Sequence record: MW057919.1 | Length of the DNA stretch: 64,000 bases | Strand: one strand, 5' to 3' | Part shown: positions 16,149-18,530 of the stretch, one piece after another | Numbering within the stretch: the first letter of the stretch is position 1 | Layout: each line of letters begins with the position of its first letter | Translations under genes and position numbers: made by a program | The notes under the pieces: model-generated | Told to the model about the DNA's origin: nothing | Database searches by the model: none | Seen by the model: only the letters and a program-made list of their open reading frames with translations

Positions 16149-18065
16149 ATGTCTAATGAACAACAGGTTACAAATAAGAAAAAGATTAAGGGCATTGAAG
16201 CCAAACATATTACTTATTGTACTGATCAATTTGGTAAGTTTACAGATGCGCATTTCGTTAAAGAACGAATTCATTTTGAAGATGGTACAACTGCAAATAA
16301 TTTAAGGATGTGGGAAAACTACCAGCGTCCTTTTTGGATTACCGCAAAAGGAATGCGTAACCATAAAGAAAAGAAAGATTACGAATATGAGCGTAACTTA
16401 GTTAAATACATGTCAACTCAAATTGACATGAAACGTAAGATTAGTAAAATCCTAGGTGACTATTCGGCTAGATCTCTTCGTCAACTAGCGCGTAGTCCTT
16501 ACCTATATGGCAGTGATGTTAGTTCAACCTGTTATCTGAAGCATGATTATCAAGAACGTTATCCTGGTCTAATCTCTCTAAACACTGTTGCTGGCGGTGA
16601 CATCGAAACCAACGTTTATGAAGCTGAGAACGATGGCCAGATTATCTGTATGTCAGTTACACATAAGAACAAAGCTTTCCTAGCCTATTTAAAACGATGG
16701 GTTAGTGATATTGAAGATCCAGTGAAAGAGACATTAGAACAAGCACAAAAAGAAGAGGTATTATCACATCTAATTAAAGAACGTGGTCTAGATATTGAAG
16801 TAATGGTTGTTGAAACACCAGTAGATATTATTATTGAATGTTTTAAACGACTACATACCTGGAAACCAGATTTCTTCGCATTCTGGAATATTAGCTTCGA
16901 CATTGGTAGAATCTTAAAAACATTAGAACACTATGGTGTTAATCCAGCTGATGTTTTTTCTGATCCATCGGTACCTAAGAATTATAGGTATTTCCATTTT
17001 AAGATTGATGAACCTATGACCACCACTGCATCTGGGGTCACTAAATCTAAAGGACCGGAGGATCAATGGCATTGGATTACAGCACCCTCTAGTTTTCAAT
17101 GTATCGATTCTATGTCAACTTATCGAGTAACTCGATTAGCTAAAGGACGTGATCCTAACTATCGGTTAGAGTCTATTCTTAGAAAAGAACTAAACATCGA
17201 TAAATCCACGACCATTAAAAATGATAAGGACTTAGAAGATTTTATTGAAGGTTTTAATAAACAACTAGTTGACCGACCAGGCGGCGTTATTACTAAATAT
17301 ATTAAAAATGTAGGTAGTAATGAATGGGTACCGGTGGATGATTTTATATTAAATGATAACTTTACCTATGGTGATTCTATTAGATATGTAATGGAATTTG
17401 GTAAGTTAACCTTTAAAGAAACTGCACATCTTGGTGGTATCGATTGGCACCGTGAGATGCAGACTAAGCATAAAATCAAATATGGTCTTTATAACATCAT
17501 CGACTCCATTCGACTAGAACAACTTGATGAACAAGTAAATGACCTTGGTCGCTCTATAAGTCTATTCTCTAAGGCATCTGACTATAAGAACTTTAGTTCT
17601 AACCCAAAACGACTATGTGACGATATGCACTTCTGGTATTTGAATAGACCAGAGCCATGTGTCATTGGTTCAAGTTCAGATCAGATGGTGCATGAACTTG
17701 ATCAATATGTTATTGGCCATAATGATTGGATTGTTACACTACCATCATACATGGCAGGTCCAAATGGATTGCAGTGTGTTAAAGATTTACCGAATTATAA
17801 AACCTTAATCTTCTGTCATATCGCCGACCTTGACATCGTGTCGACATATCCTAACGTTAGTCAGATTCTAAATATTGCACGTGAAACATGTGTGATGGAA
17901 TTCTCAATGATGGAAGGAATTAGTGAACACCATCGCCGTGAAGTTGGCGTAAACTTAACAGGTGGTAGGGTTAATGCTATTGAAATCACACAGAAGATCA
18001 TGGGTGCTCCTAAAATGGACACCCTGCTAGAGAAGTTTATTAATACCTATAAGAACCCAAAGTAA
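16149..18065 (+). CDS. gp82: Split family-B DNA polymerase subunit: 3'-5' exonuclease plus motif A (gp82 equivalent)
   Basis: ExoI GGDIET, ExoII FWNISFDI, ExoIII YNIIDS, PolB motif A DLDIVSTYPN near the C-terminus; motifs B and C absent. Confidence 0.85.
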   Translation: MSNEQQVTNKKKIKGIEAKHITYCTDQFGKFTDAHFVKERIHFEDGTTANNLRMWENYQRPFWITAKGMRNHKEKKDYEYERNLVKYMSTQIDMKRKISKILGDYSARSLRQLARSPYLYGSDVSSTCYLKHDYQERYPGLISLNTVAGGDIETNVYEAENDGQIICMSVTHKNKAFLAYLKRWVSDIEDPVKETLEQAQKEEVLSHLIKERGLDIEVMVVETPVDIIIECFKRLHTWKPDFFAFWNISFDIGRILKTLEHYGVNPADVFSDPSVPKNYRYFHFKIDEPMTTTASGVTKSKGPEDQWHWITAPSSFQCIDSMSTYRVTRLAKGRDPNYRLESILRKELNIDKSTTIKNDKDLEDFIEGFNKQLVDRPGGVITKYIKNVGSNEWVPVDDFILNDNFTYGDSIRYVMEFGKLTFKETAHLGGIDWHREMQTKHKIKYGLYNIIDSIRLEQLDEQVNDLGRSISLFSKASDYKNFSSNPKRLCDDMHFWYLNRPEPCVIGSSSDQMVHELDQYVIGHNDWIVTLPSYMAGPNGLQCVKDLPNYKTLIFCHIADLDIVSTYPNVSQILNIARETCVMEFSMMEGISEHHRREVGVNLTGGRVNAIEITQKIMGAPKMDTLLEKFINTYKNPK

Positions 18066-18433
18066 TATATCAGTGGAAGCGCCGAGGAGGATATGAATGT
18101 TCATCTGTTGGTGACAAAAGATTCTCGGCTCTTTACGCAAGGCTTCCTGATGGCAGAACAATTGAGGAAGCTTGGCAGTTAGATTGTAAAGGATATCGCA
18201 TATACTCCAACCATTGGAAAGCTGGTAAAGGAAAACCACCACTAGACGGGTATAATCCCAAATATGATGATTATAAAAATCTGTGGAAAGTATGGGCGGT
18301 ATCTAATAAACATCTAATGGATGAATTGCGTCAGAATGCAAAAGAACATGATAACTATCTTTCTGATGTTTTTGCTTCTACTGATATTTCACAGGCACGT
18401 GCTCTAGCAGAACTACTTAATGAAGGATATTAA
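18062..18433 (+). CDS. Start-less NADAR-like (ADP-ribosyl hydrolase-like) reading frame
   Basis: Open 18053-18433, VIYQWKRRGGYECSSVGDKRFSALYARLPDGRTIEEAWQLDCKGY...YLSDVFASTDISQARALAELL; first ATG only at 18317; in the -1 frame of the PolB subunit at C CCA AAG; alternatively ATA 18065 in a TAATA overlap. Confidence 0.7.
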   Translation, partial: VIYQWKRRGGYECSSVGDKRFSALYARLPDGRTIEEAWQLDCKGYRIYSNHWKAGKGKPPLDGYNPKYDDYKNLWKVWAVSNKHLMDELRQNAKEHDNYLSDVFASTDISQARALAELLNEGY

Positions 18434-18501: not shown

Positions 18502-18530
18502 CATAAAACCCTCCCATTACGGGAGGGTTT
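18502..18530. terminator. Hairpin terminator between convergent genes
   Basis: CATA-AAACCCTCCC-ATTAC-GGGAGGGTTT. Confidence 0.75.

Follow-up and report, generated by a model that had tools for sequence, protein, structure and literature searches.

In phiKZ-like giant phages of Pseudomonas, a DNA polymerase subunit gene is followed by a conserved reading frame that has no start codon. How is this frame translated, and what does it encode? We addressed these questions in a window of 64,000 nucleotides from record MW057919.1, the whole stretch of DNA analyzed here, which derives from a phiKZ-like jumbo phage. An earlier note, made from the sequence alone, had proposed that a -1 frameshift at the end of the polymerase gene appends a hidden NADAR-like ADP-ribose eraser that counters DarT. 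Its observation of the sequence proved correct, whereas its interpretation was supported in part: comparison of relatives strongly favors the frameshift, but the likeness to NADAR is weak and no link to DarT was found in the contexts examined.

Anatomy of the junction

The features of the locus are collected in Table 1. The last two sense codons of the polymerase subunit gene and the preceding C form the slippery heptamer, which is directly followed by the stop. The -1 frame opens 3 nt before the heptamer and remains open for 126 codons (18053-18430), with no ATG, GTG, or TTG until codon 89. An ORF scan returned no ORF of 40 aa or more there. The shift window is 13 nt long and consists essentially of the heptamer. 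The 761-residue fusion product calculated in the earlier note (638 + 123) is arithmetically right, and TAATG overlaps are present at the three other sites it had named (8629, 29287, and 41234).

Table 1. Features of the polymerase-domain junction (window positions)
Position	Strand	Feature	Observations
16149..18065	+	DNAP-N subunit gene, phiKZ gp82 homologue (N-terminal domain, exonuclease, little-finger insertion, and part of the palm of a split B-family DNA polymerase)	638 codons plus TAA; phrog_3011 "DNA polymerase", E 1e-241; annotated as PHIKZ082/DNA polymerase; role as DNAP-N from bioRxiv 10.64898/2026.09.30.755723 and 10.64898/2026.10.01.755736
18050..18052	+	TAA in the -1 frame	Closes that frame just upstream of the heptamer; a -1 shift can enter the downstream ORF only between 18053 and 18065
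18056..18062	+	Slippery heptamer C CCA AAG, in phase with the polymerase frame	Proposed site of tandem -1 slippage of tRNA-Pro and tRNA-Lys
18063..18065	+	0-frame stop codon TAA ("shifty stop" arrangement)	Directly 3' of the heptamer
18053..18433	+	-1-frame ORF without a start codon	Conserved 122-residue domain (phrog_9995 family) at 18065-18430; stop at 18431-18433
18317..18433	+	Annotated 38-aa PHIKZ082.1	C-terminal fragment of the domain ORF called from the first in-frame ATG, a truncated annotation; phrog_33573 covers only residues 85-122
18093..18182	+	29-aa ORF annotated in several records, probably spurious	Lies in the polymerase frame downstream of the polymerase stop; two substitutions among phiKZ-like genomes are synonymous in the domain frame but non-synonymous in this frame
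18506..18530	.	Intrinsic terminator-like hairpin with a T-run	Between the convergent polymerase/domain unit and the gp83 gene; follows the domain ORF rather than the polymerase stop

The heptamer at the junction is more than a chance occurrence. Among 17,837 codons in ORFs of 150 aa or more in the window, only four in-phase XXXAAAG heptamers occur, and the only in-phase CCCAAAG is the one at the junction. All 47 phiKZ-like GenBank records keep the heptamer, the stop, and the non-start codon. No tRNA genes were found in the window, and Rfam has no family at the site, where only subthreshold terminator-like hits were returned.

The downstream frame is a real gene

The domain matches the phrog_9995 profile (unknown function) over its full length (E 1.6e-55, residues 2-122 against profile positions 2-123 of 124), and this family of about 125 aa is widespread. 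A tblastn search found the domain full-length in 91 phage records, and 693 database proteins match it. The 13 start-less lineages analyzed for selection have diverged to synonymous saturation, yet dN/dS is 0.07-0.24 where it can be measured. An AlphaFold model of the domain has a pLDDT of 96.7. No record examined in the phiKZ group annotates the full ORF, and most call only fragments of it; neither the 29-aa nor the 38-aa annotation was accepted as a real gene.

Comparison of the junction across lineages

Reading the heptamer and the possible start codon in relatives had been proposed beforehand as a way to tell a frameshift from a standalone gene. We compared 32 non-redundant lineages with the domain directly behind the polymerase gene. 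In 20, the domain is in the -1 frame with an in-phase X XXA AAG (CCCAAAG, GGGAAAG, or AAAAAAG) inside the shift window, and 15 of these have no ATG, GTG, or TTG. The two -1-frame lineages without a heptamer (L103 and L165 in our set) both have a start codon, in ATGA and GTGA overlaps with the stop. The heptamer is therefore present in 20 of 22 -1-frame lineages and in every one of these that lacks a start codon. Two further lineages (L079/L080 and L146) have the domain in-frame behind a single TAG with no start codon, and one metagenomic contig (L099, JAAIGE0100541199.1) has polymerase and domain as a single 836-codon ORF, although this could reflect a homopolymer assembly error. The remaining seven lineages have the domain in the +1 frame, where the mechanism cannot apply, and are unexplained.

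The slippery pattern is conserved at the nucleotide level beyond what the encoded amino acids require. The third base of the preceding codon always equals X, although the amino acid varies: N, P, S, L, V, or A before CCCAAAG; L before GGGAAAG; and A, S, L, or G before AAAAAAG. In a background count there were 18 junction heptamers, against only 5 other in-phase XXXAAAG in 15,261 polymerase codons. The stop directly follows the heptamer in 9 of the 10 CCCAAAG/GGGAAAG lineages first tabulated, with TAA, TAG, and TGA all used, and L100, a lineage found later, also has TAG directly after it. Among IMG/VR loci not adjacent to a polymerase gene, the domain has its own nearby start codon or lies inside a larger ORF.

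The stimulatory elements that commonly accompany such sites were not found. There is no conserved RNA structure 3' of the heptamer (consensus -4.15 kcal/mol, covariation 0), the hairpin in the window itself has z = -1.48, and SD-like motifs 5' of the site are inconsistent, so efficiency may be low. The only recurrent feature is the 0-frame stop described above. A stimulator is not required for X XXA AAG slippage.

Relation to NADAR and domain context

The domain is not a demonstrable member of the NADAR superfamily. No match to Pfam NADAR (PF08719) or Phage_30_3 (PF08010) was found for the window protein at E <= 1 or for any of 69 family members at E <= 10. NCBIfam and PADLOC scans gave no meaningful hit, and a PDB sequence-profile search gave only chance-level uL3 matches. 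Alignment by hhalign against a single phage NADAR was not significant, nor was that against a 40-sequence phage NADAR alignment (probability 0.15, E 0.38).

Among named folds, NADAR is the nearest to the predicted structure, but below significance (TM 0.44-0.59; all Foldseek E-values to NADAR entries above 0.2). The best PDB TM-scores are to YbiA (0.53) and to a NADAR-ADP-ribose complex, 8bau (0.44), with E > 2. A cloud of subthreshold BFVD entries named NADAR gives TM 0.42-0.55 with probability <= 0.51, and 16 of these are shared with a true NADAR query. The reciprocal Foldseek search with a modeled NADAR did not return the domain family in its top 50. The model has four longer helices plus short turns and small strands. 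The order of its secondary-structure elements is parallel to that of a modeled phage NADAR, but about 30-40 residues of the NADAR core, including the middle helices and hairpin, are missing. NADARs have a catalytic Glu and Lys on the first core helix and a charged residue at the last strand (E, D, or H according to subfamily). In the domain, the invariant residues E34 and K42 lie at and just after helix 33-41, and the invariant D101 lies right after strand 98-100. In phage NADAR, E36 is invariant in the alignment, K43 is reported to be catalytic in T4 AdfN (bioRxiv 10.1101/2024.07.11.602962; PMC11125620), and H121 is invariant after strand 118-120. E34, K42, and D101 sit where E36, K43, and H121 sit, a correspondence that was read from the order of elements and not from a residue-level superposition.

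A DarT-linked antitoxin was rejected on the contexts examined. In the window, the neighbors are the polymerase subunit and virion protein genes, and the free-standing members examined lie in phage or plasmid-like accessory regions with no ART domain and no toxin-antitoxin-like or DarT-like gene nearby.

Elsewhere, the domain stands alone or is fused in-frame to RNA_pol-domain proteins, to Pif1/RecD-like SF1 helicases, and to DUF4326 and SLOG domains of the ADP-ribose/NAD network. DUF4326 and SLOG belong to the fusion network that the literature reports for NADAR. A search for more natural single ORFs joining polymerase and domain found none in that length range and recovered the RNA_pol-domain and SF1 helicase fusions instead. 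Whether the gp82 little-finger insertion co-occurs with the domain was examined by tblastn, but coverage was too fragmentary to tell.

A proposed programmed -1 frameshift

The explanation that we consider likely is that the DNAP-N (gp82) mRNA carries a programmed -1 frameshift site at its last two sense codons. In this view, most ribosomes terminate there and make the 638-residue subunit used in published structures, while a fraction slip back one base as tRNA-Pro and tRNA-Lys occupy CCA and AAG and re-pair with CCC and AAA. Those ribosomes would read the 122-codon -1 frame and produce a DNAP-N with an extra C-terminal domain. The sequence anatomy, the conservation pattern, purifying selection, and the predicted fold are established by the analysis, whereas the occurrence of slippage, its efficiency, the fused protein, and the biochemical activity of the domain are inferred, and an anti-DarT role is only hypothetical. 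That the domain is translated by recoding from the polymerase frame is very likely. Support for this comes from comparison and not from direct detection: the papers that describe gp82, including the two 2026 polymerase preprints, treat it as 638 residues and report neither a larger species nor a frameshift, and a literature search for a frameshift in a jumbo-phage polymerase found nothing. The single ORF of L099, the two lineages with an in-frame TAG, the position of the terminator after the domain ORF, and the in-frame fusions of the domain to other proteins are further support. Against this, RNA-seq tables show 10-18 times more signal over the 3' end of the domain ORF than over gp82, which could mean a separate transcript.

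The many invariant charged residues (D17, R19, D29, R31, E34, Q38, D40, K42, K55, D101, and Q110) suggest that the domain is probably an enzyme. We infer, with somewhat more support than not, that it acts on nucleic acid or a nucleotide adduct next to a translocating enzyme. Fusion to the polymerase would also carry it into the phage nucleus. NADAR-like removal of a base adduct is the most specific guess, but that the domain is a NADAR-related ADP-ribosyl glycohydrolase remains doubtful.

Alternative explanations

The best surviving alternative, though unlikely, is start-stop coupling, which the earlier note had also raised. Here ribosomes would re-initiate after the polymerase stop at an overlapping near-cognate codon (AUA in phiKZ-like phages) and make a free protein of about 14 kDa, and the heptamer would only encode a conserved Pro-Lys C-terminus. 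Such coupling is real in some relatives. Five heptamer-bearing lineages have a canonical start codon, so a free form is possible there: PhiPA3 has an ATG and PS119XW and L100 a GTG overlapping the polymerase stop, and 201phi2-1 and Viktualia have a GTG 11-14 nt downstream. The L103 and L165 overlaps, the TAATG coupling elsewhere in the window, and the higher RNA-seq signal over the 3' part of the ORF also fit this view. It cannot explain the 15 start-less -1-frame lineages, in which the codons at the homologous position vary (ATA, GTA, ACA, and others). In the AAAAAAG lineages, the polymerase stop lies 8-32 codons beyond the heptamer, so there is no stop-start overlap at the domain N-terminus. 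Further, the base before the CCA, GGA, or AAA codon co-varies with it although it lies in a different, non-conserved codon, and a fused ORF and in-frame TAG variants exist.

Slippage of the phage RNA polymerase on the short homopolymer runs (C3A3 or A6), giving some mRNAs with both parts in one frame, is very unlikely. The sites are homopolymeric, the nine AAAAAAG lineages have a run of six A, and L099 shows that a change in run length gives a viable single ORF. However, efficient transcriptional slippage usually needs about nine or more identical bases, and CCCAAAG has only three plus three. The strict phase of the heptamers and the requirement for G at position 7 are features of tRNA re-pairing, not of polymerase stuttering.

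That the ORF in phiKZ-like phages is a decaying remnant of a once free-standing gene, no longer translated, would fit the lack of a start codon and the annotation of fragments only, but this reading was rejected as extremely unlikely: the ORF is intact with all 24 family-invariant residues in the window and in all 47 phiKZ-like records at 98% or more identity, start-less lineages are under purifying selection, and nearby polymorphisms are synonymous or conservative in the domain frame.

Comparison with known recoding systems

In bacterial dnaX, which encodes tau and gamma of DNA polymerase III, a replicative-polymerase subunit gene is likewise recoded by -1 slippage on A AAA AAG, the heptamer used by nine lineages here. 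In dnaX, the shift truncates the protein, because gamma ends at a nearby -1-frame stop, and is stimulated by an upstream SD-like sequence and a downstream hairpin; here, the shift would extend the protein by a whole domain, and no conserved stimulator was found. The tail assembly chaperone G/GT frameshift of lambda-like phages (G GGA AAG in lambda) also gives a C-terminally extended protein by a low-frequency -1 shift near the end of the first ORF, with a slippery sequence that varies while the arrangement is conserved, and one lineage here (L018) uses G GGA AAG. The proteins differ in function, and in most CCCAAAG lineages the proposed shift is on the very last two sense codons, next to the stop. 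The IS3-family orfA/orfB transposase (A AAA AAG) also gives a fusion by -1 slippage on X XXA AAG, and its downstream ORF often lacks an efficient start, but it is a mobile-element transposase with a long ORF overlap and usually a downstream structure. The two lineages with an in-frame TAG have the arrangement expected for read-through extensions such as the A1 protein of Q-beta, where the stop is UGA; in these uncultured phages, UAG may be read through, suppressed, or reassigned. T4 gp30.3/AdfN and other phage NADAR ADP-ribosylglycohydrolases are, like the domain described here, small phage-encoded alpha/beta domains, with the structural parallels and differences given above.

Implications for the phage replisome

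phiKZ is the model nucleus-forming phage, and its polymerase was reconstituted and solved in 2026 as a gp82-gp50-Rhc complex with the 638-residue gp82. If a fraction of gp82 carries an extra conserved, enzyme-like domain in infected cells, the native replisome has a component that current structures, knock-down screens, and annotations miss. This would be a new case of recoding in a replicative polymerase gene, beside dnaX.

A more far-reaching reading is possible but tentative. In one clade of nucleus-forming jumbo phages, the polymerase would have a fourth, substoichiometric module appended to DNAP-N only by recoding, a link kept at one orthologous junction through interchangeable devices: -1 slippage on three different heptamers, UAG read-through, possibly a -2/+1 event on GAA AAG AAG, and outright fusion. 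On this reading, the appended enzyme must travel with the polymerase into the phage nucleus, where it would remove a base adduct, such as ADP-ribose, from template DNA at the fork.

The junction offers an unusually clear natural series in which one site would be served by several recoding devices, which is useful for learning what sequence alone suffices for slippage in Pseudomonas. It also points to an uncharacterized, probably enzymatic family of about 125 aa that recurs on polymerases, helicases, and large multi-domain phage proteins, the places where counter-defense or DNA-repair activities are expected.

The polymerase gene end and the overlapping frame

The region is 100% identical to Pseudomonas phages of the genus Phikzvirus (PA7, SL2, and many others) and 99% identical to phiKZ itself. 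The 638-codon ORF is the homologue of PHIKZ082 and matches phrog_3011 "DNA polymerase" with an E value of 1e-241. Two 2026 preprints show that gp82 is DNAP-N, the subunit carrying the N-terminal, exonuclease, and little-finger domains and part of the palm of a three-subunit B-family polymerase (gp82 + gp50 + Rhc/gp155). One 2026 preprint notes that the little-finger insertion of gp82 occurs only in Pseudomonas chimalliviruses and may bind a partner found only there, and the phages that it names are among those carrying the appended domain described here.

The gene ends AAC CCA AAG TAA, thus placing C CCA AAG in phase and directly before the stop codon. In the -1 phase, a TAA is followed by 126 open codons, and no ATG, GTG, or TTG occurs in that frame until position 18317, which is why depositors annotate only the 38-aa PHIKZ082.1, some adding a 29-aa ORF in another frame. 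The latter is probably spurious, as substitutions among phiKZ-like genomes are synonymous in the domain frame but Val-to-Ala in the frame of the 29-aa ORF. The earlier note had described a frame without a nearby start codon, beginning at the last codons of the polymerase subunit where a slippery heptamer immediately precedes the stop, and this description is accurate.

Features of the region and of the loci compared (window coordinates unless a locus, L, from our collection is named)
Feature	Position	Remarks
Polymerase subunit ORF (PHIKZ082 homologue)	16149-18065	+ strand
Little-finger insertion of gp82	17196-17393	gp82 residues 350-415
TAA in the -1 phase	18050-18052	Upstream limit of the open frame
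C CCA AAG heptamer	18056-18062
Annotated 29-aa ORF	18093-18182	In another frame; annotated in several phiKZ-like records
PHIKZ082.1	18317-18433	phiKZ 80128-80244
Stop of the -1 frame	18431-18433
Hairpin, probable terminator	18506-18530	10 base pairs, flanking A/T runs
T TTA AAG in other long ORFs of the window	7990, 35459, 37191	In phase
T TTA AAG at one homologous site in the polymerase gene	L018 1142, L027 1109, L029/L031 693, L034 687	In phase; five loci
Group I intron, PhiPA3	L004 14-319	Rfam RF00028
Group I intron, HPP-Temi	L009 584-919	Rfam RF00028
Insert at the same place as the introns	L079 about 1804-2174
TAG junction	L079/L080 about 2495-2500; L146 about 2046-2051	TAG followed by CTN
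Single fused ORF	L099 359-2869	Contig JAAIGE0100541199.1
+1-frame junctions	L010, L011/L036, L020, L025, L034, L029/L031/L110, L108, L117/L118	About 20-40 nt before the polymerase stop

The -1 frame is a gene

A tblastn search recovered the whole 123 residues in 91 phage records, with 88% identity in PhiPA3 (annotated gp084), 68% in 201phi2-1 (gp143), 58% in Phabio, and 50-55% in free-standing genes of N4-like Achromobacter and Delftia phages and of Sphingomonas phage PAU. At least 693 relatives were found in a large protein collection; most are 120-130 aa, and none has a Pfam domain. An alignment of 69 members has 24 invariant columns, many of them charged or polar (D17, R19, D29, R31, E34, Q38, D40, K42, K55, D101, and Q110). 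The family corresponds to phrog_9995, of unknown function, and AlphaFold predicts a compact alpha/beta domain with a mean pLDDT of 96.7. Among 13 lineages lacking a start codon, synonymous sites are mostly saturated, but dN/dS is 0.07-0.24 where dS can be estimated. A pseudogene is excluded.

Junctions in related phages

Polymerase-adjacent copies were collected from GenBank phages, IMG/VR, and metagenomes, and for each we determined the polymerase frame and its stop, the domain frame, start codons, and in-phase heptamers. Clustering at 95% amino acid identity resulted in 32 lineages.

Junction types among the 32 polymerase-adjacent lineages
Junction type	Lineages	Start codon at the domain N-terminus
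-1 frame, in-phase CCCAAAG	10	5 without, 5 with
-1 frame, in-phase GGGAAAG	1	None
-1 frame, in-phase AAAAAAG	9	None
-1 frame, no heptamer	2	Both have one (ATGA, GTGA overlap)
+1 frame, conserved GAA AAG AAG	7	4 with, 3 without
Same frame behind a single TAG	2	None
Single fused ORF (L099)	1	Not applicable

In the 20 heptamer-bearing lineages, the codon before the heptamer encodes different amino acids but always ends in the base that completes the triplet: AAC, CCC, TCC, CTC, GTC, and GCC before CCAAAG; CTG before GGAAAG; and GCA, TCA, CTA, and GGA before AAAAAG. This is conservation of a nucleotide pattern and not of a peptide, and the change from CCCA to GGGA keeps the pattern through three substitutions. 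Fifteen of the 20 have no canonical start codon anywhere between the upstream -1-frame stop and the conserved N-terminus of the domain, while the other five have an ATG (PhiPA3) or a GTG (201phi2-1, Viktualia, PS119XW, and the metagenomic locus L100). In the IMG/VR loci where the domain is not next to a polymerase gene, it has an ordinary start codon nearby or lies inside a larger ORF.

In 15,261 polymerase codons of these loci, 18 in-phase XXXAAAG were found at the junction, one per -1-frame locus, and only 5 elsewhere, all at one homologous TTTAAAG site. The 17,837 long-ORF codons of the window contain four, of which only the one at the polymerase end is CCCAAAG, the other three being T TTA AAG. 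All 47 phiKZ-like GenBank records keep the heptamer, the stop, and the non-start codon, and the three nearby substitutions are two synonymous changes and one Lys/Arg change in the domain frame.

Other junction types point the same way. One 78-kb metagenomic contig (L099), closest to 201phi2-1, differs in the length of the C-run at the heptamer position, with the result that polymerase and domain form one 836-codon ORF; this is either a natural in-frame fusion or a homopolymer error in the assembly. In two uncultured lineages (L079/L080 and L146), the domain lies in the polymerase frame behind the single TAG without a start codon, which suggests read-through, suppression, or reassignment of TAG. 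In seven lineages (D6, Psa21, and relatives), the domain lies in the +1 frame and overlaps the polymerase end by 20-23 nt, with a polymerase-frame GAA AAG AAG conserved just before it. The first codon of the domain is GTG or TTG in four of these lineages but CTG/ACG, CGG, or TCG in three. We cannot explain this group, although near-cognate initiation or a -2/+1 event on GAAAAG are possibilities.

The polymerase-subunit gene of PhiPA3 and HPP-Temi is interrupted by group I introns (71.7 and 59.2 bits) near residue 562/563, next to a catalytic Asp, and an HNH endonuclease ORF is annotated just upstream of the HPP-Temi intron. The gene in the window is uninterrupted.

Proposed expression by -1 frameshifting

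X XXA AAG is the class of heptamers on which bacterial ribosomes slip most readily, as established for dnaX, IS elements, and lambda G/GT. A single tRNA-Lys reads both AAA and AAG and pairs better with AAA. In the CCCAAAG and GGGAAAG lineages, the 0-frame stop directly follows the heptamer in 9 of the 10 initially tabulated and also in the later-found L100, and all three stop codons occur. This is the "shifty stop" arrangement. In the AAAAAAG lineages, the 0 frame runs on for 8-32 unconserved codons. No conserved structure was found downstream of the heptamer (consensus energy of -4.15 kcal/mol, no covariation), the hairpin of the window itself is unremarkable (z = -1.48), and no consistent upstream SD-like motif was found, and the efficiency may therefore be modest.

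A strong hairpin, probably a bidirectional intrinsic terminator, lies after the domain ORF, between the convergent polymerase/domain unit and the gp83 gene. Published phiKZ RNA-seq tables show that the last 117 nt of the ORF are transcribed, with normalized counts over PHIKZ082.1 that are 10-18 times those over gp82 and co-vary with them. This may reflect a stable, terminator-protected 3' fragment or an internal transcription start, and it is the main loose end for the rival view of a free-standing protein.

Taken together, the anatomy of the junction and its conservation are observed directly, whereas translation by recoding from the polymerase frame is inferred from comparative evidence, which supports it strongly, and we consider it very likely. 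The interpretation in the earlier note, which combined a possible frameshift fusion with a NADAR-like identity and an anti-DarT role, is thus only partly supported: the NADAR reading has weak support and remains doubtful, and the anti-DarT function is conjecture. Literature searches of the paper library found no report of a frameshift in a jumbo-phage polymerase gene, and an antisense screen and both 2026 polymerase preprints treat gp82 as the 638-residue protein. The mechanism is well established in other genes, while the instance appears to be new.

Possible relationship to NADAR proteins

No member of the family matches Pfam NADAR, Phage_30_3, or DUF4326, even at E <= 10, and a profile search of PDB sequences found no NADAR. 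As a comparator, we used the gp30.3-type NADAR of Acinetobacter phage DLP1 (accession from PMC10051250), which matches Pfam Phage_30_3 at 4e-43 and from which a 40-sequence alignment was built. An hhalign comparison of the two family alignments was not significant (Prob 0.15, E 0.38).

Structural comparison gave hints of a NADAR-like fold. In Foldseek searches with the predicted structure, no PDB entry was significant, and the only ones with a sizeable TM-score were E. coli YbiA (0.53) and a NADAR-ADP-ribose complex, 8bau (0.44). In BFVD, beyond the family itself, the sub-threshold list is rich in proteins named NADAR (TM 0.42-0.55, prob <= 0.51). Sixteen of these targets are also hit, significantly, by a modelled true NADAR, although that query did not return the domain family in its top 50. 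The two models have their secondary-structure elements in the same order, apart from a missing middle section of about 30-40 residues. Judged from the order of these elements and not from a residue-level superposition, the invariant E34, K42, and D101 lie where phage NADARs have E36, K43, and H121, D101 coming just after the last strand. PMC11125620 and the AdfN preprint describe these as the catalytic positions, and an Asp at the last-strand position marks the DarT1-associated subfamily. These observations are suggestive of a trimmed, very divergent NADAR-like fold but do not demonstrate membership.

Context of the domain family

In other phages, the domain is part of larger proteins together with DUF4326, YAcAr/cpYpsA SLOG, and DUF7831 domains, and one protein reads DUF4326, then this domain, then YAcAr. 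It is also fused in-frame, at the N-terminus, to proteins with an RNA_pol (PF00940) domain and to Pif1/RecD-like SF1 helicases, and it sits inside very large phage ORFs (up to more than 1,780 codons) without Pfam hits (entries P0241-P0257 and the large ORFs of L040-L085 in our collection). Free-standing copies lie in accessory regions of phages and plasmid-like elements, near recombination, nuclease, and partition genes, and none of those examined lies next to an ADP-ribosyltransferase. A specific anti-DarT role remains a guess. The recurrent attachment to enzymes that track along nucleic acids fits a domain that works on DNA or RNA, or on adducts on them, and we infer that, for a nucleus-forming phage, fusion to a polymerase subunit would also ensure import into the phage nucleus.
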